From positions 62,001-126,000 of the forward strand of contig JAHRHZ010000221.1 of assembly GCA_024137785.1 (NCBI GenBank): a DNA stretch of 64,000 nt. The letters are read 5' to 3'. Numbering within the stretch: position 1 is the stretch's first letter; every line of letters starts with the position of its first letter. This document shows, in pieces, positions 5,948 to 58,758 of the stretch. This DNA is from Ginglymostoma cirratum. Lineage: Eukaryota. The position numbers and the translations under genes are program-made. The notes beneath the pieces are model-generated. The model saw only the letters and a list, made by a program, of their open reading frames with translations. It was not told where the DNA came from and ran no database searches.

Positions 5948-6280
5948 ATGTCCAGATCAAACCTTCAGTTTATCTTTCCAGTACTTCCTGTGACACAAGC
6001 TCCAATCAAGATAAGATCAGCCTCCTCTGTCTGGTCAAGGATTTCCAGCCCAGGAACATCCAACAGACATGGTCCAGCAACAATAAAGAGATCACAACTG
6101 GATTCAATAAGTATCCAGCAATCTTGGGGCAAAATATGAAGTACACAATGAGCAGTGTGCTCACTGTCTCTGCGTCAGATTGGAATGCGAACAAGGTCTA
6201 CCACTGCAAGGCGGGCTACAAGGCAAATGAAGTGGTGGAAGCTGTGATCACAAAGCCTTCGCCTCCACGTCAGCCTCAAT
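5948..6280 (+). CDS. IgW: IgW heavy chain CH1 exon
   Basis: Acceptor TTTCAG ending 5947; C1-set domain (LLCLVKDFQP..QTW..YHCKAGY) with the early Cys (STSCD) typical of light-chain-binding CH1; phase-1 donor GTTAGT at 6281 (alternative GTCAGC at 6269). Confidence 0.92.
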
Positions 6281-7517: not shown

Positions 7518-7823
7518 CTCCCCAGGTCTTCTCTGTTGTTCCATCCTGGGAGATGGTCTACAATCAAACTACTGCTGCCCTGGGGTGCATACTATCTGGA
7601 TTCTATCCTGACAGTGTACAGGTTTCCTGGTTTAAAGCCGGAGTGCCAATCTCCCAATCGGGTGCCAAACTCCCTTCCACCAAGGGAAAAGGTGATACAT
7701 TTGAAACAGTCTCTTATCTGACTGTACAGGTGGCGGATTGGAAAAAAGGGGATGAATTCACTTGCGCAGTGTCCCATGAGCCGACAAGCTTCAGGACCAG
7801 GATCAACATGAAGTATCGAGAGG
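7518..7823 (+). CDS. IgW: IgW CH2 exon
   Basis: Acceptor CCACAG; PQVFSVVPS..LGCILSGFYPDSVQVSW..FTCAVSHEP; phase-1 donor GTAAGT at 7824. Confidence 0.93.
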
Positions 7824-8296
7824 GTAAGTAGACTCTGGGAGGGAGTAAGGATACCCTATCAGAAATTCAAACTTCTAATAATCGAATGCGCGAGCACTTG
7901 CTCACAATTTTTGAATCACTGACATTGATTGTAGGGACAGGGGAGATATTTAGTATTTTCTGTTTTGATATTAAAGCCACATCTAAGTGGACTATTATAA
8001 CATGAAGCACTAAGCCTATTCAAACCCTCATTCGATTTTACTTGATGTGACTGCAATAGAAATGAAAATGGGGCGAGATGTCAAATGGTCTTCTGAAAAC
8101 ATTCACAGTTCAAATCACCTTCGGTTTCCTCCCACTGCCATCCGAGTGCTGTTTTATCAAGGAAATCTTTCCAATGCTGAATTTATATGAATTACTATGA
8201 TCTACTTCAACCGTCTCCTGAGGGAGCCAATCCCTGACATAGGGGAGGAGAGGTAAAAATGTATAACATTTAAATTTGTATCTCTTCCAATTCCAG

Positions 8297-8466
8297 GTGA
8301 AAAGCCTCCACGTCCAGGTGGAAATACTGTTCACACTTGTCCTCCTTGCCCTTGTTCTGAGTCTCCGCCCGTCCTGCTCTACCATACTAGCCTTAATGTG
8401 ACCCTCAGAAATGGTGAAAAGCACCAATATAAGTGTGCCAATCAAATGTGTAAAATAAAGTTGTGA
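8297..8466 (+). CDS. IgW: IgW cysteine-rich secretory tail exon 1 (short, 2-CH secreted form)
   Basis: Acceptor TCTCTTCCAATTCCAG; in frame with the CH2 donor; [56 protein letters not shown]; AATAAA at 8454-8459. Matches the known Cys-rich tail type of short IgW/IgX. Confidence 0.88.
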
Positions 8467-9161
8467 GTTCATTGTGAGTGGAACTGGCTGTTGAATTTCA
8501 TTACAAGTCATCTGACAGGTTCCAGTTAGTGTTTCCCAGCCAAACTACTTATCTAAGTGGTCACTTCTTGGTGACATGTACTGAGTTAGGTTGCAAGTTC
8601 CTGATCCCACTGTTTGACCCTCGCCTCTTGGCTCCGACTCAGGTTGACAAGAATTTGGAAATTATTTGTCACCCAGAGGGGACGTTACCTTGCTCCAATA
8701 AAATAGGAGCTTGAGCGCTTTCTTCAACGATTTTAGTCCTGAGGCAAATTGTTAATTCGGGACATAAGGACTGATCTGGTGTCCTGTACAACTGGTAGGT
8801 TTTGGGTGTAAACAAGGGACAGTAAAATGAGAGATGTTCCCTTCAATCCTGGATACTGACAAAAGTCAATGAAATGTTCTCAATGTTGATAAGGAGTTCA
8901 AATTGACAAAGCTTTTTTTTTTAAACTTCTCCACAAAGGTAAATGGAGTGAAATGTCCCTAACCCTGTGATTTCAACATTTACCAATGATAAGGGGAATA
9001 CTTCTGACCCTGTGTGGTTTGATTGTGGGTGAGCAAACATTAAGAATTGGTCACTAATATACAGATCAATGCTAATCTGGAAGGAAATTGCTCAAATCTT
9101 GCTGAAAGACTTGTGACAGAAATGGAACGTTTGAGGTTAATAACACGTGATCCTGCCACTT

Positions 9162-9889
9162 ATTTCATCCAGCTCCAAAACTTGTTATCTCGGATTCTCC
9201 AGCATCTGCAGTTTCTATTATCTCTGATACAATTTTAACCCCACTGCGAAGCCTCTTCTAAGGATGCCTACCCTGAAGAAGTCACCCTCCTCCCTCCGGA
9301 CAAACCTCAGGGGATCTCTCTCCCACTGCAACTCTCTCATAATCTCCTCTTCCCTATCCATCTTCTATCCGCCTCCCCCTCTCTCCCTTTTTATTTCAGA
9401 ACCCTCTTTCCCTCCCCCATTTCTGATGAAGGGTCTAGGCCCAAAATGTCAAGCTTTCCTGCTCCTATGATGCTGCTTGGCCTGCTGTGTTCATCCAGCT
9501 CCACAACTTGTTGTCTCGGATTCTCCAGCATCTGCAGTTCCTATTATCTCTGATACAATTTTAACCCCACTGTGAAGCCTCTTCTAAGGATGCCTACCCT
9601 GAAGAAGTTACCCTTCTCTCTCCAGACAAACCTCAGGGGATCTCCCTCCCACTGCAACTCTCTCATAATCTCCTCTCCACCTATCCTCTCCTCTATCCAC
9701 CTTCTATCCGCCTCCCCCTCTCTCCCTATTTATTTCAGAACCCTCTTCCCCTCCCCCATTTCTGATGAAGGGTCTAGGCCTGAACCGTCAAGCTTTCCTG
9801 CTCCGATGATGCTGCTTGGCTTGCTGTGCTCATGCAGCTCCACACCTTGTTGCCTCGGATTCACCAGCATCTGCAGTTCCTATTACTTC
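9162..9889 (+). mobile_element. Penelope-like element pseudo-LTR, tandem of about 2.2 units (period about 339 bp), with 14-bp target-site duplication
   Basis: Direct repeat units; TGATCCTGCCACTT flanks at 9148-9161 and 9890-9903; hammerhead-like CTGATGA-stem-(G)AAA motifs at 9423 and 9762; inverted copy of the same family at about 44720-45005. Confidence 0.8.
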
Positions 9890-10624
9890 TGATCCTGCCA
9901 CTTTACTGGACATCAGCTCCATCTACAGCCAGAAGAGTCGGTACCTGGTGTTGATGAATGGTTTGATGGGGACACAGATACAGTAATCATTTCTCTTTGC
10001 AAGTATTAACTCAATATGATATAGAGAGAGAATAATCAGTGTGGATCAAAGCACACACCACAGTTATGGTTTGCACAGTGAATGTTCAGAACACACAGGT
10101 TGCTGCAGGATATCTGAAGTGATAATGATTCTTTGAGAGACAAGTATAAAGAAGAACATGTGATGAATTCAATGAATGATTACCCTCAAGTCTAATAGCA
10201 TTTGAATGAAATTGGACAGCATGGGGATCATGTGCTGTAGAAATGATCTCCAACATGCAACAAGAGAGAGCTAATCGTTACTCCCTGTGATACATCCCAA
10301 GGTGGTGGAAGACCAGAGAGGAATTGCTACTGAGTCAAAAAACGCTTGGCCAATGAGATGGTTTTAAAAGGTGTCATGAAGGAGGAGAGAGAAAGAGAGA
10401 GGATAGGTCACTGAGAGATAGGGAGTGAGTTCCAGAGATTTGGACCTGGCCACCAATGCTTGGCTAAAGGGATTATAGGATTTACAAGAGATCCAAAGTG
10501 TACAGAGTTTCCAGATTATTGTAAAGCTGAAGAAGATGACAGGGAGAGGGAAGGCCAAGGCAATGGAATATTAGGATTAGAATCATAAAACAGAGGCTTC
10601 CAGTGCTGACTCCAATGAGAGAAA

Positions 10625-11030
10625 GAAAAGAAAGATTTACATTTATATATCTTTTTCACAATCACAAGACATTCTAAAGTCCTTCACAGCCAATTAGGTA
10701 TTTTAAAGTGTAGTCACCCTTGTGATGTAGGAAACATTACAACCAACCTGCACAGAAGAAACTTCCACAAAAAAATGTAAGAATGACACAGTAATCCACT
10801 TTTTGTGATGATGACTGAGTGATAAAATTGGCCAGGACATCGGCAATAGCTCTCCTGCTTTTCTTCAGAATAGTGCTCTGCCATCTCTTACTTCCACCTG
10901 AGACAGCGGTCGGGACCTGATTTTCATTTCTCAACCAAAGCAACTCCCCATGGTCTGCCCTGAACTGCTAGCTTTGAATTTTGCATTCAAGTGGATTATG
11001 ACCCCGACAATGCCAACACAGAGGCGGCAG
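10625..11030 (-). mobile_element. Deu-domain SINE (SacSINE1-like)
   Basis: AAGTGTAGTCAC..GTAGGAAAC..TTGGCCAGGACA..TCCACCTGAG motifs shared with other copies in the window. Confidence 0.6.
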
Positions 11031-11542
11031 TGTCATGGGTGAAAGAAGTGGGCTTCTCATTGATTTGGCGTACTTAACATCAGAAATCAATCCACTGTCA
11101 CACTCAATAAGAAGAATTTGTTCAATTGTTCATTTTGCTGAGTAGATTGTATCTCTGTCTCACTCCATTTCACAAATCAGAGATTGCATTTATTAATATT
11201 GTTGTCTCTGAAAACTGCTCAGTCCACAAGTCAATTGCAGGCCTTGCATGAAATCTTGATCACAGACGTAGGAAGCAGATTTGAAATGGATCTGGCTCAT
11301 TCTTAATGCAGTGACTGTACATTCTTGATCAAAACTTGCAAACGGAGAATTGCAAAACATGTTTTAAATAACCCTTGGATTTTCTAATGGTCGAGTATCT
11401 GCTGCAGATTTTCTGAATTAAAAAAGACTCTAGTTCAATGCCACTTCTGTCCCCATATTTCATTGTTTCTAATGATAGCAAAGCCTTCCCTAAACATGAG
11501 AAAATATCAATTCTTCTGAACATTTTCCTTTCCCATTCCCAG

Positions 11543-11845
11543 AAATGACTGTCTTTCTCCAAAATCCTTCAATCAAAGAGCTTTGGATCAACAAGACCGC
11601 AACCCTGGTGTGTACAGCAGTGTGTTCTGATTCCAGCCGGGTCCGGGTCACCTGGAAAGTAAATGGGAGACAGAGAAGTAAAGGGGTTACAGCTCAGCCA
11701 CAGAGAGAGGAAGGCACCCAATACATCGTCGTCAGCCAACTCCGAACCACAGCAGCGGAGTGGGAGAGTGGGGTAGAGTTTGTGTGTTCTGCTCAAAGTG
11801 GTCCCTCATCCTCACCAGTGTCAAAGCGGTCAAGGAGTGTAAAAG
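11543..11845 (+). CDS. IgW: IgW CH3 exon
   Basis: Acceptor TTCCCAG; MTVFLQNPSIKELWINKTATLVC..W..FVCSAQ (homologous to IgNAR C2); phase-1 donor GTGGGC at 11846. Confidence 0.92.
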
Positions 11846-11935
11846 GTGGGCAAGAGATCAAAAATTACATATCTGACTTTGCCAAGCTTGAAGTAAAGAG
11901 TTTAACACCTTCTTTGTTTTGCCTGTCTGTTCCAG

Positions 11936-12253
11936 TTCTGCAAAAAAGTCCCGAGGTCAGACTGCTGCCTCCACCGGCCCAAGAGACCAAGAATCAGAGC
12001 AGAGTTACACTCGAGTGTGTAATCACTGGATTCTACCCAGACCTCATACAGGTCTCCTGGGAGAAGGATAGCAGCCTGATCTCCTCCAATACCCGTGCTG
12101 GCCTCACTGCTCTGGAGCAGACGGGGACATTCAGTGTCAGGCACTACCTGACTGTGAGCACAGAGGAGTGGAGGAAAGGTTCAGTCTTCACCTGTGTAGT
12201 GTCTCATCCACCATCCAACTTTACCAGCAGTAAGGAGGTGAAGAATGTTCAAG
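11936..12253 (+). CDS. IgW: IgW CH4 exon
   Basis: Acceptor GTTCCAG; PEVRLLPPP..LECVITGFYPDLIQVSW..FTCVVSHPPS; phase-1 donor GTAAGT at 12254. Confidence 0.93.
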
Positions 12254-12890
12254 GTAAGTCCTGGGCCTGGTGCCAAGATTGATATCATTTATCCTTGGAG
12301 AAACTCTCCTCACACCAGTTTGTAAAAGAAAAAATTCTGGGCCTGAGTGGAGCTCCATATTCTCTACTGCAGGACAATGGAGGTGAAGATATGTGTTACC
12401 AACATCATTAACTCTTTCAGTTTGAGACAGAAACAAAACCCTTCCTATTCCAGGTGGGAATGGTGGATGCTCTTGTTCTCTCTGCATGGCAAGGTTCCTG
12501 TGTAAGGCTAAATTTGACATCACTTTCTCTGAAGGCAATATGAATGTGACCAACAAATGTATGCAATCCATTGATGTGGGTTGATTGTGAATTGAATCAC
12601 GTTGATCTGGTGTAAGAATGTTGTTCCATTGCAGTGATGTTGGTCATAAGCTTTCCTGCTCCTATGATGCTGCTTGACCTGCTGTGCTTATGCAGCTCCA
12701 CACCTTGTTATCTTGGTCATCAGCGTAGTTGCTGAGAGAGAACATGAAAATCTTGCTGGGTGTTGTCAAGAACCGTAAACCTTGAGAACCTTTGATCTTT
12801 GAAATGCAAACTGTTCTACTCGAATTATAATCAGAATTAGAGTTGTCTTTATGATCATGTGCACTTGAATGAGTGACGTGAAAAATTTGC

Positions 12891-13330
12891 AAAGTCGCCG
12901 TTTATGGTGCCATCTTAGGTACAGGAGACCAAGGGACAGATACTTAAGTATTTGTTAGAGAATTGAAAGATTGAAAAAAAAGTCCAGCACAGGAATACAA
13001 AGTTTCAAAAAGAACTCGCATTATTCAAAAAGACCAGCATAAGAATAAAAAGGTTTTTTAAAAAGTTACCAACATACAGTCTTTTTCACCAAGTCCGTGC
13101 CAGCACCTAGTCTCCAGACTGCACCGGGCAAGTCTCTAGTCCACATAAGGCTTGAAAACTCCAAACCTCGCTTTCAGTCTGCAAGGGCCTTGCCTCCCTG
13201 GTGGTGGCCTCCAGTCCGGGTCTCGCCCCTGGGACTTGCCTCCCTGCACTGGCCTCTGGTTCGGGACTCTCATCCCGTGCCGGCCTACAGGCTGGGCACC
13301 CCCGAGACACAAGTCCTCGAAGGATTGTTT
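12891..13330. repeat. Interspersed repeat, copy A (direct repeat of 14918-15420)
   Basis: AAAGTCGCCGTTTATGGTGCCATCTTAGGTACAGG...GCCAGCACCTAGTCTC...; GC-rich internally repetitive end; probably the 5' end of a minus-strand LINE. Confidence 0.75.
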
Positions 13331-13739
13331 ATGGAAGGATTGTTTATAATTTGGCAATTGAAAGAATTGCCTTGATTTAGGTTAATAGGTCAGCACGACA
13401 TCGTGGGCCGAAGCGCCTGTACTGTGCTGTATTATTCTATGTTTCTATGTTCATCTGCTTCACCATCTCGAGAGAGAGGCTGACCCAGAGATGAACCAAT
13501 TGATGGCTGAACATTTCTTTTGAAAAGACATTCCTGCCGAGTCATTTTCTCTAATCTTACCATTCTGGACAAGGTGAAGCAGCTTTACATCATCAACATG
13601 ATCTGGTTCATTTATAATTCTAAACAAGCATGATGGAGCAGAGTTTCAAGGCTGTGGTATTGGTGTTCCCACTTTACCAGCGCAGGGGAGGAGAGGTAAA
13701 AATGTACAACATTAAAATTTATAAATCTTCCAATTCTAG

Positions 13740-13900
13740 GTGAAACGTTTTCATGTCTAAGTGGAAATCCTCCTGGCACTTGTCCTCCTTGCACATTTGC
13801 ACCGGAACTGCTCTACCATACTAACCTCAGTGTGACCCTCAGAAATGGTGAAAAGCACCAATATAAGTGTGACCAACAAAAGTGTCAAATAAAGTTGTGA
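13740..13900 (+). CDS. IgW: IgW cysteine-rich secretory tail exon 2 (predicted 4-CH secreted form)
   Basis: Acceptor TCTTCCAATTCTAG; in frame with the CH4 donor; [53 protein letters not shown]; AATAAA at 13888-13893; clear paralogue of 8297-8466. Confidence 0.85.
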
Positions 13901-14917
13901 ATTCATTCTGAATGGAAGTGGCCATTGAATTTCATTACAGGGCATCTGGCAGGTTCAAATCCAGCCCATGGTGTCAGAAGTGTAAAAACTGTGAGAAGTG
14001 AGAGCTCTCGTTCGTGTTTCCCAGCCAACCTACTGTTTGCTGAAGTGGTCACTTGTTGGTGACCTGTACCAGGTGAGGTTGCAAGGTCCAAAACCCACTA
14101 TTTAACCCTTTCCCCTTGGCTCTGACTCACGTTGACGAGAATTTGAAGAATATTTGTCACCCAGAGGGACCGTCACCTTGATCGAATAAAATAAAAGCTT
14201 GGCCTCTTTCTTCAATGATGTTGATCCTGAGGCAATTTGGTAATTCAGAATATGAGGGCTCAGCTGGTGCTCTATACAAATTTGTATGTTTTGCGTGTAA
14301 ACACAGGACAATAAAATGAGAGAAGTTCCCTTCAATCCTGGATACTGACAACAGACAATGAAAGTTACTCGGGGTTGACAAGGAGTTCAAATTGACAAAG
14401 TTTTTTTAAACTTCTCTACGAAGGTAAACGGAGTGAAATATCCCCTACCCTGTGATTTCACCATTTTCCAGTGATAAGGGGTTGTGTGGCCCTGTGTGGT
14501 TTGATTGTGGCAAAGCAAATATTAATAATTGGTCACTAAAATAATGATCAATGCTAATCTGGAAAGAAATTGGTTAACATCTTGTCGGAAAGACACATGA
14601 GAGAAACAGAATGTTTGAATCCTATCACTGTCCTGAGCATCAACTTAAATGCAGTGACAGGAGTTGGTACCAAGTGTTGATAAATAGTTTTGATTAGGAC
14701 ACAGATACAGGAATCATTTCTCTCTTCAAGTACGAACTCAATATGTTATAGAGAGAGAACAATCAGTGTGGATCAAAGCAGGCACCACAGTTGTGGTTTG
14801 CACAGTGAATGTGTTTGTACATTGACCATGTACAGAATACACATTTTGGTGCAGGATATCTGAAGTGATGATGATTCTTTGACAGATAAGTATAAAGAAA
14901 AGAAATGAAAAATTAAC

Positions 14918-15420
14918 AAAGTCGCTGTTTACAGTGCCATCGTAGGTACAGGATGCCTGGGTAGATACTTAAGTATTTGTTAGAGAATTGAAAGAATAAA
15001 AAATCAAGTCCAGCAAAGGAATACAAAGTTTTTGAAAGGAACTTGCATTACTCAAAATGTCCAGATAAGAGTAAAAAGCTTTTTAAAAAGTACCCAAATG
15101 ACAGTCCTTTTCACCGAGTCTGTGCCAGCACCTAGTCTCTAGACTGCACTGGGCCAGTTTCCAGACCACACGAGACTTGAAAACTCCAAGTCTTGTGTCC
15201 AGTCTGCAAAGGCCTTGCCTCCTCGGCGGTGGCCTTCAGTCTGGAACTCGCCTCCTGGCAACTGCCTCTGGTCTGGAACTGTCCCCAGAATGCAACTCCC
15301 GCACTGGCCTCCAGACCAGGCTCCCCCGGGACTCGCCTCCAGGACACTCCTCCTTTGCTGGCCTGGTCTCAGATATGCCTCCAGGATTCATCATGACTTC
15401 GTCCAGTCTTGGAGTTGCCT
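14918..15420. repeat. Interspersed repeat, copy B (direct repeat of 12891-13330)
   Basis: AAAGTCGCTGTTTACAGTGCCATCGTAGGTACAGG... colinear with copy A. Confidence 0.75.
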
Positions 15421-15917: not shown

Positions 15918-16238
15918 ATGAATGTTTGGACACTGGAATCTCAGTCACCTTAAGCAAGCCTCCATTTGCAGAGATCTGGAGGAACAGAACAGCAACCATT
16001 CTGTGTGAGGTACTTTACCGTGATTTAGAGGGAGTCAGGGTAACCTGGAAAGTGGATGGAATCATGAGACAAGATGGAGTGAAGACCCAGGGTCCCAAGA
16101 AAAGTGGACATAAAGAGATCATCTTCAGTAGACTGACAGTCCCTGCTGCAGAGTGGGAGAGTGGGGTCGAGTATATGTGTTTGGTGGAGGACAAAAATTT
16201 GCCAACACCAGAGAAGAGGTTCATCAGGAAATCCCAAG
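15918..16238 (+). CDS. IgW: IgW CH5 exon
   Basis: Acceptor CTCCCAG; DECLDTGISVTLSKPPFAEIW..ILCEVLY..YMCLVEDKNLPTP (homologous to IgNAR C4, with N-terminal extra Cys); phase-1 donor GTATGT at 16239. Confidence 0.93.
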
Positions 16239-17292
16239 GTATGTGTCGATGGAACTGTGTGTCTGATCTTAGAAAATGAGGTGATTTATTGCCAGAGTGC
16301 CAAGCAGCTTGTCACAGGCTGTCACAGTCCGTTACAAGCCCAGAGATGTGTGTGATCCCAATCAAGAAACTGACCAGATAAAGCCTCAAAGCAACTCAGC
16401 AGCCTTGGTTTGAATCACACTGGTTCCCAGGGGATGGGATCATGGTGATAGGATAGTCAGAGAGGGATTAGCAGTTTTGCAACATTTAATATTCCATCAA
16501 TCCAGCACTGGATTGTAACGGAGAGTGTCAGTCTGAGGTGTAGGCTGAATACGAGCAAATACATGGAGAAGAAAAGGAGAAAGAGCAGGGAGCACCAGAT
16601 TAGAATAATGCATGAAACCTCCCTGTTGACATCAGGAAGTGGTTCTCTGGTGTTTCTCAGAAAACTGTGCCATTTTAGAAGATGCTATTTGGTCGATCAT
16701 GTCATTGCCAGTTCTCTGAAATAGCTATTCAAATGATTCCATGCATGATCTGCTCCAACTCAGCAACCTTCCAGTTGTCTATTTTTCAATTTTTTTTGTC
16801 CGATTCCCTGGTGAAAGTTACCGTTAAATTTGCTTCCATCCTCTTTCATGCTGTGCATTCCAAGTCATCGTAAGTTGTGGAGCAAATCAAATTCAATTAT
16901 CAACCCATGGGTTCATTTCCCTTTCCTCTCAAATGTCTGTTCTGACTTGCCTGTCACTGGAAAAAGATTTTCCATATCTATTCCATTCGAATCACTGATG
17001 ATTTGAAGGACTTTGATTAATTGCAAGAACAGCCCAGCTGCATTAATGATGTTGACACTTTTTGCGAAAAAGGGGACCCCCACCCACAGTGAGAGAATCA
17101 ACAGGATTGAAGATCCCATCCTTGCACAACGTTCCCAAAAAATCAACATGGAAATAAATGCTTTTAGTTTCTGATCTCAGAGGAGTTCCTGGGGATGCAA
17201 ACGTTGCTTACTTTTGTCCAAGAGACAAATGTGTTGGGTGAATTCAGGTCGAGTGAACGATGAAGTCTAACCTCTGTTTTGTCTGTTTGCAG

Positions 17293-17675
17293 ATGATATT
17301 AAGACTCACCCTCAAGTCTACCTCCTGCCCCCTTCACCGGATGAGATGGAGACTGCTCATACTGCGACCCTGGTTTGCCTGGTCACTGGATTCTCTCCCG
17401 TAGATATCGATCTGGCTTGGATGGCCAATGATACCCTTCTGAAGACAGGGTTCATTCATCAGCCAGTGACTGAGGATGGCAGAGGAGGCTGGAACTCAGG
17501 CAGTCGCCTGACGGTCTCTACAGAGGAGTGGGACAGCGGCACCACATACTCCTGTGTGGTGGGACATGAGTCAGTCACAACAAATGTATTCAGAAGCATC
17601 AATAAATATCACAGCAAACCCAACCTGGTTAATGTCTCACTTGTTTTGACTGAAAGTTTTAACTCCTGTTCATAA
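17293..17675 (+). CDS. IgW: IgW CH6 exon plus IgM-type secretory tailpiece (long, 6-CH secreted form)
   Basis: Acceptor TTTGCAG; HPQVYLLPPSPDEME..LVCLVTGFSP..YSCVVGHES; tailpiece HSKPNLVNVSLVLTESFNSCS* with NVS sequon and penultimate Cys. Confidence 0.95.
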
Positions 17676-19508: not shown

Positions 19509-19648
19509 TCCCTCCAGATGTGAAAGGAGAGGAATGGAAGGAAGAGGTGGAAGATATGGATGGAGATGACAACGTGCTAACAGTTGCTGCCTTTGCCATT
19601 CTCTTTATTCTTAGTTTTCTCTACAGCACCTTTGTAACTGTTGTCAAG
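19509..19648 (+). CDS. IgW: IgW transmembrane exon TM1
   Basis: Acceptor TTTTAGCAG; VPPDVKGEEWKEEVEDMDGDDNVLTVAAFAILFILSFLYSTFVTVVK with the conserved antigen-receptor TM motif (F..LF.LS..YST.VT); phase-0 donor GTAATC at 19649. Confidence 0.93.
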
Positions 19649-20284
19649 GTAATCGGACATTAACTACCAAATCAGCAATGACCTATACTGACTATATGTG
19701 TAAAGATTATGTTCGATTTATCAACATAATTTATTATGTGGCTCTGAGATTCTAGCTATCACATTAGAATTAAGTTAAGAGTTGAATGTGGAACCTTTCA
19801 CACTTTGAAGTTTTTGTCTCCACTTGGTCTCTGGGTCTTCATCCACCAATGATGGAGGTCAGGCCCATGGGCCTTGTGTTCCAGAATAAAGTCAGGCATC
19901 CTAGCATTTAGATCTATCTCCCACAATAAGGTGAGGCCAGTTGACCTGAAAAACCCATCTGTGAGAATAAAGAAACTTTTATCTTCACTTGCAGTTTCTT
20001 GCCCACCCCAGCCAATTCACTATCCATGCTCAAACACTACCTTCAACACCATGGGCTCTTATTTTCTGACAGCCTTTTGTGAGGTACCTTGTCCATCTCC
20101 CAGAGTAAGGGAAGACCACTTGTCCATTTGGATCCATCTCCCAGAACAAAGAATGACCATCTGTCCTTTAGGGTCAGTCTACCAGGATCAGGAAAGAACA
20201 CCTGTTCTTTTGGGTCTATCTATACGTTTGGTTCAGACTGCCTCTGCCACACAATTGTACTTTATTCTGCTTTCTGTATTACAG

Positions 20285-24400: not shown

Positions 24401-26199
24401 GTGGCTCAAGTATGAATGAATTCCCCTGCAAACACACTCATTTGGATACATAACAGAACATACACAAAAATCAAGTTTTGGAGGAGATTCTTCAAAGTCC
24501 CTGTGAATTCTCTCAAAGCAGATTCAATTCAGGAACAGATATTGGTCCGGAATGTGGAATAAAATTTTCATGTTTGGGGAAGTCTCACCAGTCCAGTAAA
24601 TATGCCTAAAGCCCAGATATTGGGAAGTGAGGAATTGAGTGAGATTCCAGATTATACACACAACAGAATCAATTCAACGTTCTGAGGATAAATCATCACA
24701 TGACCATTGAGTGCGATTCAGTACGAAACCCATGTCACTCTGGTGAATAGATTCCAGATTTTGACAATAATTAGCAGATACATTGCATGTGGGAAGATGG
24801 GCCCAGTATCAAATGTTGGGCAATATTTCAATTTCCATATAGAAGAGAATTTGCTGAAAAGGATCACTGGGGAAATACAATCCAGGACAAGGTAATGGAC
24901 ATATACACTCTAGTAGAAAAGATTCCCAATTCTGTGAAATGGGAATTACTTCTCTGTGTTACTGTCACTGGTGGAATAGATTCCAAATCCAGATATGGGG
25001 ATAGGACCCACTGTCAAAGATGATGGAATTCCTCCGACAGACAGACAGTGGGGGAATACATAGCAGTATAGCATACTGTGGGAAATTCCCCATCTGAGAA
25101 ATTATGGGATACCCCACATATTAGGGAATACAATCCAGGAACAGTTATTGGGTGAATGCAGCTCAGGTCCAGAAAAGACAGATGATTCCCAGCATTAATG
25201 TAGCCATCAATTCCCACCCCACCGCTCCGACCCTCAAAGCATATGAATTGGGCGCACAGTACCCTCAAAAATCATATAAGAGGATTTACAGTCCCAGACA
25301 GGAGGTAAATCCACCTGTATAATGAATTCAGGAATGCATTCAAGAAGCTTATAATGGGAAAGATTTCCGAGTACGTTTCTGGCAGTGGTTCTCCAGCATA
25401 TTCCTTGTGATAATACACATCAACATTTAAAATTGGGAGAGATTCCTATTCAGACTATCAGGAAATCTTCCTTCACTCATTGGGAATTGACCTCATGATA
25501 ACCTTAGAGATCCCCTGGCCTACTTTGGAAGGATTGTCTCCACTGCACTTATTCTGAAAATACACCCTAGGTTAAGAAATTACGGAAGTAAGCTGGTGCA
25601 ACTGGGAAGAAGTCCTCACAATATACATCAATGGATTACACCCCAATGCCATATATTGGGGAATGTACCTCAGAATGAGGTAATATAGAGAAGCATCTAG
25701 ACAAGTACATGCATGAGATAGGTATGGAGGGATATGGACTAAATGTAGAGAAAAGGGACTAGTTTAATTGTGAAAACTGGGTGGCATGGGCAAGTTGGGT
25801 CAAAAGGCTTGTTTCCACACTGTAGACCTCTTTGACTTTATGACTGCATCTCAGGGACAGATATTGAACCATGCAACCCAAGTTCTGGAGGTTCCAGAAC
25901 CCAAGTGGAGGAGGTTCTCAGACGCACGGATAAATGAATTTCTAACCGAGCTGATTCCTTGAGGGAAGCAGACTGCAAAAACCAGTATATAGGAGAAGAA
26001 TCCCAGGTCCATGTAAAAGGAAATCTATTTTGTACAAAGAGGTGGAGAAATCACCCAAGGGCTACAACTGAAACTATGTTGGTTGGCTGGAGGACAGGGG
26101 TGGGTGGGAGAAGGCTTGAGGTTTCGGGGAGGGTGATGAAATTCGCAGTTCGATGAAAGAGCTAATTTCCCCAAATAGAGACATTGTGAAAATGGAGTA

Positions 26200-27500
26200 A
26201 ACGTGGTAAATGGTGAGTTGATGAGGAACCATCATTATGGATTCCCACAGGGAAAATCATGTTTAACTATCTTGCTGGAGGTTTTTGAAAAGGGAACCGA
26301 GAGGGTTGATGAGTTTAATGCTGTTAAGGTGGGGCACATGAACTTTCAGAAAGTGGTTCCTGCAAAGACACACAACAGACTTGCAAGGCAAGTTGTAAGT
26401 CATGCAATAACATTGTCAGTAACAACATCGATGCAAAATTGGCTGAGTATTCGGAAACAGAGAGCCACAATCAGTGGACATTTTTCACGCTGGAGGAAAG
26501 TTTGTTGTAGAGTCTTCCAGGACTCCGATTTTGGACATTCGCTTTACAAATATTGATGATCTCAATCTTGGTGCGGAGGGGGCAATTTCAAAGGTTGTAG
26601 ATGACATAAAACTTGAAAGAATTGCAAACTTTGAGCAGTACCGTGTAAAACTCAAAAAGGACACGGAAAAGTTGGTGGAGTGGGCAAATGGGTGGCAGGT
26701 GACTTTCAATGTAGAGAAGTGTAAGGTGATACATTTTGGTGGCAAGAATATTGAAAGACACCACAAAATAGGGAATGCAATTCTATGAGGATGCAGAAAC
26801 AGAGGAACCTTGGTGTATATGTGCAGTGAAGATTGAAAGTGCAGGACAGGTAGAAAGAGCAGTAAGGAGAGAAGACAGCATTCCTAGCTTCATTAATAGG
26901 GGCATAGAGTCCAAGATTAAGGTGGTAATATTCAATGTGTATAAGACACTTTGCAGGTCACAGCTGGAGAACTGCACACAGATCTGGGCACCACATTACA
27001 CGATGGATGTGAAAACATTGGAGAGAGTGCAGAATTGGTGTACAAGGATGGTTCCAGGGATGATAAACAATTATGAGGATATCTTCAGGAGACTGTTCTC
27101 CTTGGTGAGAAGAAAGTTAAGAGGAGATAAAACAGACCATTTCAAAATCACGAGTAAGCTCGACAGCATACATAGGGAGAACGTGTTCCAGCTCGTAAGA
27201 GGGACAAGAACAAGAAAAGTGCATAGACTTAAAGAGATCTACAAAACAAGCAAGAGCGAATTGAAGACAGGTTTTCTTTCACTCTGTGAGTTGTTAGGGA
27301 ATAGAATGCACTGGCTGGAAGTGTAGTGGAGGCAGGTTTAACTGAGGAATTCAAGAAAAGACATTGAATGACTACTTGAATAAATATAATGTGCATGGAT
27401 ATGGGAAAATCCAGGGGATTGGCACCAGGGAATGATGATCGTTTAGTGATCTGGTGCAGGCATGATGGGCTAAATGGCTTCCTTCTACACAGTGACATGT
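26200..27500 (+). mobile_element. CR1-type LINE RT fragment
   Basis: HYGFPQGKSCLT, VDDIKL, WQVTFNVEKCKVIHFG, YKTLCRSQLENCTQIWAPH; frameshifted. Confidence 0.9.
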
Positions 27501-27929
27501 CTTTGGAGCAATTCTTTCTCACTTTGCTCCACAGTTTTTTAAAGAATAAAAAGATATGGGCTTTCCAGGCTTCCACCCTGAAGACAATGAAATGTCATTT
27601 CATAAAATGACTTTTCTTTACAAAATCTGTGATATATGATAATGTAGTGCCCAGAACTGTACACAATGCTCCAGGTGAGGTCTAACCAGTGCATTCACAA
27701 GGAAATCTGCATGTTTTGAAAGCAGATAATTTGCTACCCAGTGTAAACCATATTTGTGTACCTGTGGGTTACAGCAATATGCAGATGAACTGGAGCCATG
27801 GACATATTTAGCAGTGAAGCTGACTGGCTTGTGGCTTAGTCACCAAGGTCCTCTGCCTGCCAACAGATATGTGATTGGTTATCAGGGAGCTGAACAGTTT
27901 GGGACTGTGAACACAACAGAGAGGGGAAG

Positions 27930-28135
27930 GAACAAAAACAGAAATTGCTGGAAAGGCTCAGCAGGTTTGGCAGCACCTGTGAAGAAAAAAAAATCAGAGT
28001 TAATGTTTCGGGTCAGGTGACCTTTCTCTGAGGAAGGGTCACCTGACCTGAAACACGAACTCTGATTTCTTTCTTCACAGATGCCGCCATACCTGCTGAG
28101 CTTTTCCAGCAACTTCTGTTTTTGTTCCTGATTTA
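27930..28135. repeat. Palindromic (head-to-head) Penelope-derived element
   Basis: About 95-bp inverted arms AACAAAAACAGAAATTGCTGGAAAGGCTCAGCAGG... and ...CCTGCTGAGCTTTTCCAGCAACTTCTGTTTTTGTT; related copies at about 46000-46200 and 53550-53830. Confidence 0.85.
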
Positions 28136-28199
28136 CAGTGTCTGCAGTTCTTTCAGATTTTAAGACAGAGAGAGGTTGGTTCAGATCAGGAGAGAAACT

Positions 28200-29525
28200 A
28201 CCAGGTCTGCAGCAGTCAGGAGTTCCTTCTCTCAGTTATGTGCAACAAATCACTGTAAATGTGAAGAAACCATCTTATCTTTCCTTCAGCAGTTGTTGCA
28301 GCAGTGATTTTTAGATGATAAGTCAGAGATCTTTTATAAGTGAACTGTTCAGTGCCCCTTACAAACCAGTGGAAGCATTCGGGAAAAGAAAAGCCGAAGA
28401 GAAGCCTTTGAATCAGCAAGAACCAACCCAAGAAATCTCATGAACAAAGACGATGGAATTGTTTCTCCAGTTTCTCCTCTGCCTATGTCTTCATTTTACC
28501 CCGTTTGTGTTTAAGTCTGCGTTTGTGTCTGTGAGTGTGAGGGGGGAGTTTATAAGGCGGTTTGGAGTTTTAATTAGTAGAGTTAAATGCTAACAGTTAT
28601 ATTGATTTATCTATGTCAAAAATCTAATTACCTGCAAGACGCAACGGTTATTGCTCATGACAGAAACCTGGTCTGTGCTTTCTATCAACCCTGGTCTGAA
28701 ATCAGGCAGTCTGGAGCTTTACTTTTGAAAACTTGAACTTTTGCAAAATTTCCAAGGATAGGGAATCTCACTACGCCAGTGAGTTGTCACAAAGTCTGGG
28801 GATTCTTAGCCGTGATTTGACTTGAAACTGAGGCAATGGGGGATTTGGGTACGGTGTTGGTTAAGGAAGACACCAGGTTCTGTGCCTGGTTTAAGACTTG
28901 GCACTGGCAATGGCAAAGTATTTCCTGCAGGTGGCAGACTTGACCCTGGTACTCTTCACGGTATTTTCAAAACCTGGTTGGTTGGCCTGGTGAATAAGGA
29001 CAAGACAAGAAAGGCATAATAATTCAAGTACTAGAATAGCGCTGAAATTTAGAAGAAATACAGAGGATGCTGAGTATTTCGTACATGAAACGTGGGAATC
29101 AGGACATATTCAGTTACAGTGGCTGGAGTATAAGGAAAGAATGAAGAAACGAGAGATGGCAGAAAAGGACAAAGAAAGAGCAGAGAAATATAAGAAAATG
29201 GAGATGGTGATGGAAATGAAAATACATTTCCCACTGCTGATGCTGCACCTGAGGCTGAAGGAATTCCAGAGTGTTATTGGATTAAAAGCAGAAGTTTGTT
29301 GACCAGACCTGCTGATGAAGAAGAGATGGTTGTTTATCGTCAAAGGTATAACCAGATATCATGAGGAGATATTGTCAGTAGCACATGGAGTTCAAATGGC
29401 ATAAAGGAATACAGACAGCACAGGTATCAACACTCAGGTATTTTACATGGCCAGGACTCCATAAATATGTACTGCAGTACGGTAAAACATGTCAGATATG
29501 TCACATAGTCAGAAAAGTCCACCAA
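28200..29525 (+). mobile_element. Highly decayed Gypsy LTR-element remnant
   Basis: LTR-like segment ending GTTGTCACA at about 28790; integrase zinc-finger remnant (LSVAH..YFTWPGLHKYVLQYGKTCQICH) at about 29370-29520. Confidence 0.55.
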
Positions 29526-30428
29526 TAGAACAAAGAACAAAGAATAAACAAAATTACAGCACAGGAACAGGCCCTCCGGCCCTCCGAGCCTGCACCGATC
29601 CGGATCCTCTATCTAAACCTGTCATCTATTTTCTAAGGGTCTGTATCCCTTTGCTCCCTGTCCATCCATGTAGCTGTCCAGATACATCTTAAAAGACACT
29701 AACGTGTCTGCGTCTACCACCTCTGCTGGCAACATGTTCCAGGCACCCACTGCCCTCAGCGTAAAGAATTTTCCACACGTATCTCCCGTAAATTTTCCTC
29801 CTCTCACTTTGAACTCATGACCCCTAGTAATTGAGTCCCCCACACTGGGAAAAAGCTTCTTGCTATCCTCTTTGTCTATACCCCTCATGATTTTGTAGAC
29901 CTCAATCAGGTCCCCCCTCAATCTCCGTCTTTCTAATGAAAATAATCCTAGTCTACTTAACCTTTCTTCATAGCTAGCGCCCTCCATACCAGGCAACATC
30001 CTGGTGAACCTCCTCTGCACCCATTCCAAAGCATCCACATCCTTTTGGGAATGTGGCGACCAGAACTGAACGCAGTACCCTAAATGTGGCCGAACCAAAG
30101 TCTTATACAACTATAACATGACCTGCCAACTCTTGTACTCAATACCTCGTCCGATGAAGAAAAGCATGCCGTATGCCTTCTTGACCACTCTATCGACTTG
30201 CGTTGCCACCTTGAGGGAACAGTGGACCTGAACACCCAGATCTCTCTGTGCATCAATTTTCCCCAGGACTTTTCCATTTACTGTACAGTTTGCTCTTGAA
30301 TTAGATCTTCCAAAATGTATCACCTCGCACTTGCCCGGATTGAACGCCATCTGCCATTTATCTGCGCAACTCTCCAATCTATTTATATTCTGCTGTAATC
30401 TCTGACAGTCCCCTTCACTATCTGCTAT
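29526..30428 (-). mobile_element. CR1-type LINE 3' portion, relatively young
   Basis: ADKWQMAFNPGKCEVIHFG, YKTLVRPHLGYCVQFWSP, LGLFSLERRRLRGDLIEVYKI; (AGAACAA)n tail. Confidence 0.93.
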
Positions 30429-30429
30429 T

Positions 30430-32817
30430 AAAATACTTTTATGGCGTAAATTTGTCGGGGTAACAGATCAAAAACTTCTGCTAGAGCCACTCAAAAAGGA
30501 AAAGGCCATGCCACCCACAGCTTCAGGTTGAATTCTGGGGTGGGCTCTCATTCTAAGTGCATACATTTACAAGTTGGAACAACATCTGGGATGCCAAGTA
30601 GAAAATGTGGATGCCTTGAGCTGCCTTCTGCTGGCAGATATGCCACTGGTGGCGCCACCACTGGAAGATTCCGTTCTGGTTTTAAACTTTCTGGTCACCC
30701 TTCAGGTTACCACTGACAATATCAGACTGTGGATGTAAAAACATCTCGACTTGGCAGAACTAAAACAGCTAATGGTGACTGGGGAAACAAAAGGGTCATT
30801 ACAAACAGAAGTGAAACCTTTTTGGACCCACTAAGACTAGATCACCATGGAGGACGGTGTTTTATTATGTGAAGCAACAGTGACTGTCCCGAGCAAAGGT
30901 TGTGCCAGATGGAGCTGAGCTTCACCAAGGTAATCCAGAAGTGTCCAAAATGAAGGTGTTGGTGAGAAGTTATATCTGCTGACCAGGATTGATTGCAGAC
31001 ATAACTGAATTGGTTAGGCATTGCTCAGAGTGCCAACAGGACAAAGTTTACCCCCAGCAGCTCCCCACATTCTTGGAAATGGCCGTGTAAATCCTGGTTA
31101 CATGTTGACTGTGCTGGCCCTTTCATGGGCTCAATGTTCTTAGTCATTGCGGAGGCCCACTCGAAGTGGCCGGACATGAATCAGGTTCATTCCTCAAACA
31201 CAGGGATGAAGATAGAAAAGATGAGAGCATCTTTTGCAATACATGCGCTGAAAGAAGTGTTGGTCACAGACAATAAGCCATCATTTACAGTGAGGAATCT
31301 GAATATTTCCAGAGGTCAGATGGCATTAGGCAAATAAGGACAGCTCCACACTATCCATAGTCCAACAGTGTCCTGGAAAGAGCAGTCCAAACTTTAAAGG
31401 CAGGCTTAAAGTAACAACCCACAGCTTCACTCAATACCAAACAGTCCCGGTTCCTGTTTGATTATCAGATCACCCCTCATGCAATTGCAGGAATAACTAC
31501 AGCCGAGTTGCTAATGGGAGAAGACTCCACCCTTAGTTAAATCAGATGTTTCCGGACCTGTGGGGGAGGGTGAAACAGCATTAGGAATGCCAGTATCAAG
31601 TGCCAGACTCCGCTAAAAGAGACAGTTTACTACAGGGGATGAAGTTCTGTGCAGGAGCCACATGGACAGGACCAGAAACGTATAAAGTTTAGGTGAAACT
31701 ACGGTGAAACACGCTCAAATTGGCACCAAAATGGGAGAATTACGCCAAACGACAGAGCGCAACTCGCGAACAACTCTACTTCCAACATAGATACCTCAGG
31801 AATCAGGTATTAACATGCAGTGTGAGATACAAACCACCCACCAATAACCCATAAGCCTGCAAAACAGCAGAACAAAACGGCCGTAGGATCGTAAAGGCAA
31901 CGATAAACGACGCGCACAACCGGCTCTACAGATACAACAGAGAAATTACGCGCCAAAAGACTTTATTCCTGGAAGCTACCAACCAGGACTGGACCACGGA
32001 CCTGGAACAAGCCATCAACATCAGCCAACAGACCACAAGAGCCAAGAAAAGACAGGCTTTTCAGGACGGAAGTGAGGTAAGCCAGCTCAACAGACTCCAG
32101 AGTTTAAAAACCATGCCGGAAAACACAACAACACTTCATCGGAGGCTGCACTGATGATGTTACTCAGCTGGGTAATGAAACATCTGCAGAACAACAAGAA
32201 ACCAGCTCAGCGAGCCAACTAACCTCAAAGTTCAGGTAGGAGTGACGGTCCTGAATACACTTGTGGACCATATGAAAGCCACAAATTTCCCAAGCAAAGT
32301 CAGGAAGGCTGTCAGAACTCTTAGGTTTTCCCTCTCCGTCAAGTATTTAAGGGACCTCAGAATCTGAGATGAACACGGCTGACGCCTTTGGACACGGCAT
32401 TGACGCCTTTGCTACCAGAATAAGACAGAGAATTTCTCTCAAGGGTCTCTGGGCAAAAAGGTGAGACCCTGTGCATTATGTACGGTGCCTGTATCTGACA
32501 CTGAGGAACATAACCTGGTGCTAAAACGCCCAAGGTGGCATGACCAAAGAAAGGACTGGCCTGTGGCCTCGGATTCAGAGGGGAAAGAATGCAATGATTG
32601 TAATGAGGTCAGCCAGGTGATCATCGTAGAATATATGCTCCCTGTTTGGGGATGTTAATCTGGTTCAATCAGGAAGACCTGGCTGACAGATAAAAAACTC
32701 GAGTGTCAGACATTCTGAGAGCTGGCTCTGAGGGAGCTGGATCAGTGTCAAGGACCTTCCACATGTAAATAAAGCATGATCTGGTGCCAGGATACCGGCC
32801 TCTGTGGAGTTATTTCA
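30430..32817 (+). mobile_element. Gypsy LTR retrotransposon remnant: RNase H end, integrase, PPT and 3' LTR
   Basis: GWALILSAY..NVDALSCL; HVDCAGPFMGSMFLVIAEAHSKWP; polypurine tract AGAGGGGAAAGAA 32577-32589; LTR TG..CA 32590-32817 containing AATAAA. Confidence 0.88.
31695..32226 (+). mobile_element. Internally deleted Penelope-like element inserted in the Gypsy element
   Basis: N-terminal PLE-like peptide (..REQLYFQHRYLRNQVL..KATINDAHNRL..), hammerhead motif 32146-32189, flanking AAAGTT(T/C)AGGT at 31684-31694 and 32227-32237. Confidence 0.75.
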
Positions 32818-35800: not shown

Positions 35801-36480
35801 CAACACAATGGAGGTGATTCTCAATGTGAAGGCGGGACATCATCTCCACAAGGACTGTGCAATGGTCACTCTTACCGATACTGTCATGGACAGATTCATC
35901 TGCAGCTAGCAGATTAGTAAGATCCAGTCTAGCAGCTATGTCCTTTAGGACCCGACCAGCCTGATCTGTAGAACTGCAGCCAAGCCACTCTTGGCGGTGG
36001 ACAGTGAAATAACCCACCCTTGTATATTGTGTGTCCTTGCTGTCCTCAGCGCTGCCTCCAAGTGTTGTTCAACATTGAGGATAACCGATTCATCAGCTGA
36101 GGGACGATGGTATGCGGTAATCAGCAGGAAGTTTCCTTGCCCACCTTTAACCTGAAGCCATGAGACCTCAGGGGCTCCAGAGTCAATTTTGAGCAGTCCC
36201 AGAGCAACTCAGTCCTGACTGTATACCACTTTACACTCACCTCTGCTTGTTCTGTCATGTCGGAGAGACAGGACAGATCGCGGGATTGTGAGAGTAGTGT
36301 CTAGGACATTGCCTGTAAGGTTGATTCCATGAGTACAGCTTAACTAGGCTATGAGACAGCTATCCCAACTTTGGCAAGAGCCCCCAGATGTTAGTGAGGG
36401 TGGACAGGTTGTTTCCACTGCTGTCTCTTCCGGTGCCTAGGTTGATGCCAGGTGATCTGTGCAGTTTCATTTCTTTGACT
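32818..36480 (-). mobile_element. Non-LTR retrotransposon (CR1/L2-group LINE), two decayed copies
   Basis: RT motifs KLDTAKVMGPDNIP..NYCPVSLLSIISK..QFGFRQGHS..ALDIKAAF, GVPQASVLG; endonuclease-region remnant at about 35700-36300. Confidence 0.88.
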
Positions 36481-50741: not shown

Positions 50742-51055
50742 AGGCTGTGAGCTGAGAATTGAGAATGGGGACAGTCCTTGTACTGGCCGAGTGGAGGTTC
50801 ACTATGATGGACTGTGGGGGACTGTGTATGATAGTGACTGGGACCTGGCAAATGCTACTGTAGTTTGTCGGGAGCTGGACTGTGGGACCGCGCTCTCTGC
50901 CCCAAGCGGGGCTCACTTTGGACCAGGATCCGGACCAGTTGTGACAGGGAAATTTTGGTGCAGTGGGACTGAGAGTGCTCTGCGGGACTGTCCATCATTG
51001 GATTGGGGTCAATACAACTATTCACACGCCAATGATGCTGGTGTCATCTGTTCAG
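50742..51055 (+). pseudogene. SRCR domain 1 exon, CD163/WC1-like
   Basis: LRIENGDSPCTGRVEVHYDGLWGTV..VVCRELDCG..CSGTESALRDC..DAGVICS; donor GTAAAA; first codons out of phase with the CAG acceptor (apparent 1-nt deletion). Confidence 0.88.
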
Positions 51056-51618
51056 GTAAAAATCGACTGCTGTTTCTATCTCGTTTTATCACAACCTGTC
51101 TGAATCCAGAAAGGGATGCGATAATACAACGACAACTGTCCAATAATTATGGCCATCGTCATAATCAAATCACTGTTTCAATCCGTATCACTATATAATG
51201 CGTCGAATACTTGAAAGTAATGGCAGAGGTGATTATCTGTTTCTCTTTACACTCCAGTGAAGAGGCAGAAGTGGTGACCACTGTGGTTTCACTTGAAGCT
51301 GCACTCATACACCTGCAGTGCTGGAACTATCAAATATAAAAACCAATGACTAATAAGATTCTACACTGCGTGGTGTAGCAGAGTCAGTTTGTGTCATTTA
51401 TCTGAGTCTGAAATTCTCTTTCTTGCAAAAAGCCGAGGATCAGAAATCCTGGGGTGAACAGAAATGAGTTCGACAGGGCACCAACCCGACACAGACTGAT
51501 GGAACATTTCACACGTGAATGTGATAAGTCTGTCATTAATCAGATGAATGTTCATCTGTAAATAATATGAGTTACCACTGTTGCAATTTCTTATGATTCG
51601 GTGATTTTTTTTTGCTAG

Positions 51619-51934
51619 AGCACAGAGCTCCGCGGTTGGTGCCCGGAAATTCCCAATGCTTCGGCAGGCTGGAGCTGCAGTTCGGCGACACTTCGATAAC
51701 AGTGTGTGGTCTTGACTGGGATTTGAAAAACGCCAATGTGGTCTGTGCACAGCTTCATTGTGGAGTGGCCTTAACTGTGTCAAGTTCTGCTCATTCTGGA
51801 GGCAGTAATATGCTGATGAGTAATGAGATCTTTGAATTATACGGACAATGAGAATCAACTGGTAAAGTGCCCTCGGTCATCATCCGTTCGCCAGGATTGC
51901 AGTGGACACAACAACGTCACCCTGATATGTTCAC
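51619..51934 (+). pseudogene. SRCR domain 2 exon, frameshifted
   Basis: PRLVPGNSQCFGRLE..VVCAQLHCG, +1 frameshift at about 51838, then NENQLVKCP..DCSGHNNVTLICS; donor GTGAGT. Confidence 0.88.
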
Positions 51935-54660: not shown

Positions 54661-55009
<349 letters not shown>

Positions 55010-58520: not shown

Positions 58521-58641
58521 CTAGCTCAACAAACACTCTCAATGTTTCGGTTTCATATGAAATTCATCATTGATGAATTCTTTGCAATTATACAAGGCAG
58601 CATCTAACGAAGATAAAATTCTCTATAATCTCTTCTTTAAG

Positions 58642-58758
58642 GACAGGAAAGTGAATCCATTTCCATACCTGTTGTCGTCTGCTTAACTTTAGGAGTTCTG
58701 TTAAACCTAGATTTGATCGCACTACTAGTGGTAATGTGGAGAAAATTGCAAATGAAAG
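58642..58758 (+). pseudogene. Transmembrane exon of the SRCR receptor
   Basis: TTTAAG acceptor; QESESISIPVVVCLTLGVLLNLDLIALLVVMWRKLQMK; phase-1 donor GTGAGC. Confidence 0.75.

Follow-up and report, generated by a model that had tools for sequence, protein, structure and literature searches.

The two cysteine-rich secretory tail exons of a shark IgW heavy-chain gene differ almost exclusively at amino-acid-changing sites, and this skew is on balance probably the product of a weakly constrained, hinge-like linker joined to a conserved core, with no demonstrated adaptive drive. The two exons, here called tail A and tail B, lie within a 64,000-nucleotide (nt) stretch of contig JAHRHZ010000221.1 (positions 62,001 to 126,000; hereafter the window, in whose coordinates all positions are given), in which an exon scan showed the plus strand to carry a complete constant region of one IgW (omega) heavy chain. 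Along the cluster the exons follow the order C1-C2-tail A-C3-C4-tail X-tail B-C5-C6/tailpiece-transmembrane (TM), tail X being a third tail-like exon described below. An initial annotation of the window had counted 19 non-synonymous differences and one synonymous difference between tails A and B and had read this as diversifying selection on an exposed linker. The 19:1 ratio holds up and is somewhat surprising, and its significance depends on the test used. Measured against the non-coding DNA that was duplicated together with the tails, the departure is a shortage of synonymous change over the whole exon, and only the N-terminal linker exceeds the neutral (flank) rate.

Codon alignment of tails A and B was restricted to the 47 codons outside a 3-codon indel, and differences were counted by the Nei-Gojobori method. 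The alignment contains 19 non-synonymous differences and a single synonymous one (CTT/CTC) over 111.3 non-synonymous and 29.7 synonymous sites, giving proportions of differing sites (pN and pS) of 0.171 and 0.034, respectively; the counts of the initial annotation were thus exact. Codon positions 1, 2 and 3 hold 9, 9 and 2 of the differences. The concentration toward the N-terminus that had been described was also found: 12 of the 19 non-synonymous differences fall within codons 2-12, and the first 12 codons together contain 12 non-synonymous and no synonymous differences. Over the C-terminal 30 codons pN is 0.096. TCPPC, LLYHT and a 13-residue block are identical in both tails, as had been noted, and include a 41-nt run of identical DNA. 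Each tail has five Cys, one of which has moved, and the sequon reads NVT in tail A and NLS in tail B, in agreement with the earlier description.

Co-duplicated non-coding DNA around the two tails served as the neutral reference. Self-BLAST aligned 8241-9134 with 13684-14618 (77.1% identity over 951 columns) and 9892-10153 with 14619-14899 (78.4%). The co-duplicated block is ∼1.2 kb long and begins ∼50 nt 5' of the acceptor. Its first copy is split at about 9135-9891 by a short interspersed element (SINE)-like insertion consisting of two tandem copies that are 90.6% identical. Within the aligned flanks, 161 of 970 sites are mismatched (0.166, or 0.188 after Jukes-Cantor (JC) correction), and divergence ranges from 0.125 to 0.182 among the four flank segments.

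Comparisons between synonymous and non-synonymous sites gave results on both sides of conventional significance. Fisher's exact test yielded p=0.075 and a binomial test p=0.056. Neutral simulation using the flank-derived mutation spectrum predicted a synonymous fraction of 0.25 and returned P(S≤1)=0.011-0.018 for 18-22 differences. A pairwise Goldman-Yang-type likelihood over the 47 codons estimated omega (dN/dS) at 7.4-8.4, with p=0.007-0.013 in the likelihood-ratio test (LRT). The p values of these tests, which rest on two sequences and 20 differences, therefore span 0.007 (LRT) to 0.075 (Fisher). When the exon was divided, the C-terminal 30 codons gave omega ∼2, which is not significant (p=0.5-0.58), and N-terminal partitions, picked post hoc, gave an unbounded omega with p=0.001-0.005. 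A composition or mutation bias (Pro codons, C-to-T change) was considered as the cause of the skew and ruled out, as the flank-spectrum simulation still expects 25% synonymous change.

Comparison with the flanks locates the anomaly differently. Over the whole exon, 28 of 161 sites are mismatched (0.174 versus 0.166 in the flanks), and ∼18.5 non-synonymous differences are expected at the flank rate against the 19 seen (P(≥19)=0.48; P=0.31-0.34 by simulation). Synonymous change, on the other hand, lies below the flank rate, with one difference among ∼30 sites (P=0.03), as does third-position change, which is seen in 2 of 47 codons (P=0.010). The 'strong excess' proposed initially is therefore nominally significant against synonymous sites by simulation and LRT, but not by the Fisher or binomial tests, and there is no whole-exon excess over the flanks. 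The initial annotation had also named non-synonymous divergence no higher than that of flanking intron as evidence against selection; this is what we found for the whole exon (JC-corrected dN of 0.194 versus 0.188), but not for the linker. In the linker, delimited post hoc as the first 12 codons, pN is 0.447 versus 0.166 in the flanks. Its 12 mismatches in 36 nt have P(N≥12)=0.0005 in a simulation with a uniform flank rate; 12 or more also occur in 25 of 935 sliding 36-nt windows of the flanks, where the maximum is 14.

Both tails are, by sequence match, Cys-rich secretory tail exons of elasmobranch IgW/IgX. All exons of the cluster were searched singly, with none joined for any search. Six exons matched the Pfam C1-set family (E=2.6e-09 to 1.1e-19), and tails A, B and X matched no Pfam family. 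Tail A by itself, used as the query of a word search, gave no match among candidates of 30-96 residues. A profile built from the two tails and run against 1.84 billion representative proteins returned four matches at E≤1e-3. Two of these were genuine, namely the horn shark 'IgW chain C region, secreted form 2' (P83743) and a sawshark 'splenic IgW, short secretory form-like' protein; the other two were unrelated repeat proteins and were dropped. Further word searches retrieved 9 proteins from 414 candidates and 3 from 18, among them short forms of skates and sawfish as well as two cDNAs of the nurse shark. A profile of 10 external tails, run against 2,219 open reading frame (ORF) fragments of the window, ranked tail B, tail A and tail X first to third, and the next fragment scored 0.25. 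Tails A and B each form a separate exon behind a C1-set exon, with a phase-compatible acceptor, an in-frame stop and a poly(A) signal of their own. All introns of the cluster are phase 1. The acceptors of A and B (AG/GT, the slash marking the junction) lie at 8296/8297 and 13739/13740, the first full codons begin at 8299 and 13742, both frames end in TGA, and the AATAAA follows the stop by ∼230-285 nt. The C2 donor (G/GTAAGT, phase 1) is compatible with tail A or C3, and the C4 donor (likewise G/GTAAGT, phase 1) could be spliced to tail X, tail B, C5 or the TM exons.

The two nurse shark (Ginglymostoma cirratum) cDNAs show each tail type joined to its upstream domain in other clusters. AAT02198.1 ('IgW short') consists of C2 followed by an A-type tail that begins at GGN and ends KIKL. 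A tblastn comparison shows full identity to this protein over the C-terminal 31 residues of tail A (8371-8463), and an alignment read by eye indicates that the cDNA lacks EKPPRPG and TVHTCP and has F for SES, making it 15 residues (7+6+2) shorter. AGY29600.1 ('secreted IgW heavy chain', 595 residues) runs V-C1-C2-C3-C4 straight into a B-type tail that is identical to tail B at 51 of 52 residues, the sole difference being L6P. Both C2-to-A-type and C4-to-B-type joins are thus present in cDNAs, and judged by these identities both tail types are expressed exons already on record from the nurse shark. Because its C domains are 88-96% identical, exon by exon, to the nurse shark IgW cDNAs, the cluster in the window was assigned to the nurse shark type of IgW, from the nurse shark itself or a species very close to it; the same differences mark it as a cluster other than those from which the cDNAs were derived.

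A further explanation of the skew, that one tail is a dead copy drifting freely, is very improbable. Four sequencing runs were aligned to 8001-14000 at 85% likeness, so that paralogous reads are included. In the poly(A) RNA run X21, C3 and C4 reached ∼170-190 reads per strand and the C3-to-C4 joint was crossed by 137 RNA reads, whereas tail A (14-18 reads per strand), tail X (17-21) and tail B (21-31) remained at intron level, and no tail splice joint was among the joints listed for this run in that interval. Intron-level depth of all three tails in this one run is the observation in favor of a dead copy. Such depth does not amount to silence of the tails, however, nor does the run prove that this particular cluster uses them. 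Nurse shark cDNAs end in B-type and A-type tails, the acceptor, frame, stop and AATAAA are kept in both exons, and the core is conserved. A dead tail exon is ruled out by cDNA AGY29600.1.

The N-terminal linker, in which most replacements lie, is also variable in length. Besides the 9-nt difference between A and B, linker indels comprise the 15 residues by which the A-type cDNA differs and a 21-nt deletion at 8292 in one contig of run X12, derived from a relative or paralogous cluster, whose missing bases are the first 21 nt of tail A. Codon models restricted to substitutions are therefore unsafe in this region, since they can count indel-linked or multi-nucleotide events as several replacements. 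The first 21 nt of tail A match the preceding 21 nt at 13 of 21 positions at a shift of 21, compared with at most 9 of 21 at 12 other shifts, and the match extends to 17 of 23 with flanking bases by hand count. These properties suggest that the first seven linker codons are probably a duplicated splice acceptor with its polypyrimidine tract, an origin that would explain the pyrimidine-rich, Pro-rich makeup of the exon start and the C/T swaps found there, which make up 5 of the 7 differences over these 21 nt and keep the stretch pyrimidine-rich. The exon starts in both 8276-8320 and 13719-13763 resemble the 21 nt before them, with an internal CAG/GT at 8315-8319 in tail A and TAA/GT in tail B. 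Between 8303-8317 and 13746-13760, 6 of 7 differences run one way (C or G in A, T or A in B); these transitions are clustered and strand-consistent, but the numbers are too small to interpret.

Alignment of 13 tails places this variability in a family context. Linker length spans 10-28 residues and the total number of Cys 4-7, and a sequon is absent from 2 of the 13, whereas the C-terminal module has been conserved in skates and sharks alike. In the sequon region most outgroups read N-L-N-V-T, which is likely to be the ancestral state. A single N-to-S change in B would then remove NVT and create NLS, while A appears to have changed the upstream N to S. Since one substitution moves the sequon in B, a compensatory pair of changes is unnecessary, and the 'compensatory retention' of structure invoked in the initial annotation is not needed, given the spread of Cys number and the sequon-free tails across the family. 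When the 19 aligned amino-acid differences were polarized with the outgroups, 5 were assigned to the A lineage, 6 to the B lineage, and 8 were ambiguous; the possibility that tail B is a relaxed, faster-evolving copy was ruled out by these counts. Between clusters, tail B differs at 1 of 52 residues, as compared with 42 of 642 (6.5%) in the C domains (P(≤1)=0.14). This suggests that tail B is at present at least as constrained as the immunoglobulin (Ig) domains and that any acceleration took place early and has since ceased; the near identity of the two B-type tails speaks against ongoing diversification.

Episodic positive selection, in which the linker of one or both copies was adaptively remodelled after copying behind C4 and then held by purifying selection, is possible but on the doubtful side. 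Possible drivers are a fit to a different upstream domain, altered disulfide pairing or protease escape. The elevated omega with its LRT, the simulated scarcity of synonymous change, the linker pN relative to the flanks, the unchanged third positions of the linker and the subsequent conservation of tail B between clusters all agree with such a history, for which work on the primate IgA hinge (Sumiyama et al. 2002, cited in PMC10435986) is a precedent. Set against these are the equality of whole-exon dN with the flank rate, the Fisher result, the setting of the linker partition after the data had been seen, and the equally divergent neutral windows. In addition, the several indels in the region make site homology and single-hit models doubtful, Cys number and sequon vary across the family, and only two DNA sequences are compared. 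The original interpretation is thus borne out in placing the fast change in the N-terminal linker, with a nominal omega >1, but the whole-exon rate and the proneness of the linker to indels leave diversifying selection undemonstrated. A more specific form, in which a burst of adaptive change in the linker after copying (a relocated Cys, a sequon shifted by one substitution, three codons lost) was followed by freezing of both versions across IgW clusters, is a little more doubtful again. If it were true, covalent assembly or protease resistance of two-domain and four-domain IgW would have been tuned separately in sharks, an independent and far older parallel to the evolution of the mammalian IgA and IgG hinges.

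An improbable alternative is that amino-acid change is unremarkable and that the skew instead reflects a shortage of synonymous change, arising by chance or through homogenization or constraint at the nucleotide level (gene conversion of the core, splicing enhancers or a polypyrimidine tract). About 5-6 synonymous differences are expected and one is seen, the core holds the 41-nt identical run, and the C/T swaps leave the exon start pyrimidine-rich. Taken piecewise the shortage is not significant, with 0 versus 2.1 expected in the linker and 1 versus 2.8 in the core (Poisson, by hand). A splicing constraint is made doubtful by the loss of the internal AG in tail B, which has TAA for CAG. Gene conversion of the exon core was ruled out: the flanks are as divergent near the exon (12.5% upstream, 18.2% in the 3' untranslated region (UTR)) as far from it, which leaves no tract, and a 37-nt identical run occurs in the flanks too.

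We therefore return to a conserved core preceded by a weakly constrained linker. Under this scheme tails A and B would be alternative 3'-terminal exons, with the phase-1 donor of C2 or C4 spliced to the tail and the AATAAA of the tail ending the message early, so that a two-domain or four-domain secreted IgW is produced in place of the six-domain form. Tail B arose through copying of the block with tail A to a site behind C4. Each tail would comprise two modules under different constraint. The C-terminal module, formed by LLYHT and the next 25 residues and common to sharks, skates and sawfish, would be under purifying selection. The N-terminal Cys/Pro-rich linker would be hinge-like, namely short, of low complexity and tolerant of length change and replacement, with its CPPC presumably making disulfides between heavy chains, and would have diverged at or above the neutral rate, partly by indels and possibly by multi-nucleotide events. 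The 19:1 ratio would then combine replacement at the neutral level, focused in the indel-prone linker, with a conserved core and a synonymous shortage within the range of chance. The exon anatomy, the block duplication, membership of the tail family, the presence of both tail types in cDNAs and the counts are established here. Weak constraint on the linker, as opposed to an adaptive drive, is our inference from these comparisons, and several results weigh against it. Omega=1 is nominally rejected over the exon as a whole (LRT and simulation) and in the post-hoc linker (p=0.001-0.005; simulation 0.0005), and composition bias leaves the skew unexplained. An unconstrained linker should also show third-position change, yet none of the 12 linker differences in 36 nt is at a third position (P ∼0.002, hypergeometric, by hand). 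Finally, the single change in 52 residues between clusters includes the linker of tail B, which is therefore not free of constraint today.

Table 1. Coordinates of the IgW constant-region exons and of the features of the duplicated tail block in the window.
Feature	Position	Strand	Basis or remark
C1 exon	5948-6280	+	Pfam C1-set
C2 exon (C1-set Ig domain)	7518-7823	+	Pfam C1-set E=1.4e-19; 95/101 residues identical to nurse shark IgW cDNAs
Duplicated block, copy 1	8241-10153	+	∼50 nt of intron with acceptor, tail A, 3' UTR, poly(A) signal, downstream DNA
Tail A, secretory terminal exon after C2 (2C isoform)	8297-8466	+	55 codons + stop; external tail-family profile E=1.2e-21
First 21 nt of tail A	8297-8317	+	Split Gly codon, EKPPRP and first base of next Gly codon; ends in in-frame internal CAG/GT
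Indel region	8350-8373	+	8 codons in A (PCSESPPV), 5 in B (TFAPE); 9-nt difference
Poly(A) signal AATAAA, tail A	8697-8702	+	Counterpart kept in the duplicate at 14185
C3 exon	11543-11845	+	Pfam C1-set E=3.2e-13
C4 exon	11936-12253	+	Pfam C1-set E=2.4e-19
Tail X, third, degenerate member of the tail family	12454-12584	+	Profile E=7.1e-07 (ORF 12426-12581), third best of 2,219
Duplicated block, copy 2	13684-14899	+	Acceptor, tail B, 3' UTR, poly(A) signal, downstream DNA
Tail B, secretory terminal exon after C4 (4C isoform)	13740-13900	+	52 codons + stop; profile E=9.2e-24
Two overlapping AATAAA poly(A) signals, tail B	14185-14195	+	Sequence
C5 and C6 exons	15918-17672	+	Pfam C1-set; 101/106 and 117/125 residues identical to nurse shark cDNAs
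C5 exon	15918-16238	+	Pfam C1-set
C6 exon with contiguous classical tailpiece (6C isoform)	17293-17672	+	Pfam C1-set
TM exon of the IgW gene	19511-19651	+	tblastn 78.7% over 47 residues to the C-terminus of a 4C membrane-form protein

The start of tail X lies 200 nt downstream of the C4 donor; its phase-1 acceptor is good, and its frame closes with a stop. It codes for G-GNGGCSCSLC...NVT..KC..., a start (GGNGGCSCSLC) that resembles the sawshark tail, but the conserved Tyr, the final Cys and the terminal IK have been lost, and its nearest AATAAA is 460 nt away. It may be an older post-C4 tail that was functionally replaced by tail B. The high-copy SINE-like repeat that interrupts the first block copy, where it covers 9164-9893, is also present at 12648-12724, 44730-44955, 47061-47282 and 59181-59263. 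It attracted enormous read depth in all runs, those of relatives included, and run X22 aligned to this repeat only. A 364-nt element occurs on either side of the tail B block, in two copies that are 82% identical (12879-13242 and 14906-15268); it may be an interspersed repeat or a trace of block insertion. Outside the IgW cluster, many ORF fragments on both strands of about 26000-42500 resemble by eye the reverse transcriptase of long interspersed elements (LINE type). At about 50686-58922 on the plus strand, several long ORF fragments resemble scavenger-receptor Cys-rich (SRCR) domains followed by a hydrophobic stretch, which suggests a neighboring gene for an SRCR membrane protein.

The tail exons and the isoforms they end are already published. 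Nurse shark IgW clusters reportedly carry two interspersed secretory exons. The clusters represented by AGY29600.1 and AAT02198.1 have the same exon order as the window, with the B-type tail after C4 and the A-type core after C2; here the linker of tail A is longer than in the IgW-short cDNA, by EKPPRPG and TVHTCP, and a third tail-like exon lies between C4 and tail B; both features may already figure in earlier nurse shark work. The short IgW/IgX tails of horn shark (P83742/P83743), sawshark, clearnose, thorny and little skate and sawfish follow C2 and share the core, C-x-x-C...P-x-[LF]-[LIV]-Y-[QH]-[TS]-x-[LV]-x-[VA]-[TS]-[LF]-x-x-G-x-x-x-[QH]-Y-x-C-x-x-x-x-C-x-I-K; they differ in linker length, Cys number and presence of the sequon, over the ranges given above. 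None of the retrieved proteins of other species had a tail of this kind after C4. The tailpiece of the mu/alpha type, also found here at the end of C6, is like tails A and B in being C-terminal, in combining a sequon with Cys and in ending a secreted heavy chain. Unlike it, each of these two tails is encoded by an exon of its own that has its own poly(A) site. Tails A and B have 52-55 residues as compared with ∼20, and their last Cys is 5 residues from the end rather than penultimate. No Pfam or profile link connects tails A and B to the C6 tailpiece. Their classification as mu/alpha-type tailpieces was rejected on these grounds, the true tailpiece being contiguous with C6.

The primate IgA1 hinge is said to be a short Pro-rich linker in which replacement exceeds silent change and length change is frequent, and its adaptive evolution has reportedly been demonstrated over many species. 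The linker of tails A and B is likewise a short, Pro-rich antibody linker, but the IgA1 case draws on many species, whereas the present one compares two paralogous exons with borderline statistics. Two reviews describe secreted IgW forms with two, four, six and eight C domains (2C, 4C, 6C and 8C) generated by alternative splicing and a 2C tail that is long and Cys-rich (PMC4279169, PMC5192425). No selection test on IgW is reported in PMC5278576.

What the present analysis adds is modest: a quantified division of the tails into conserved core and labile linker, a neutral reference taken from the DNA duplicated with the tails, the probable derivation of the first seven codons from a duplicated acceptor, and a degenerate third tail-like exon behind C4. 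The function of IgW/IgD is among the least understood questions of comparative immunology, and in sharks a single cluster gives rise to many secreted IgW isoforms. If the 2C and 4C tails have been shaped by selection, distinct effector or assembly roles of these isoforms would be indicated, and the residues at which to test such roles would be known.

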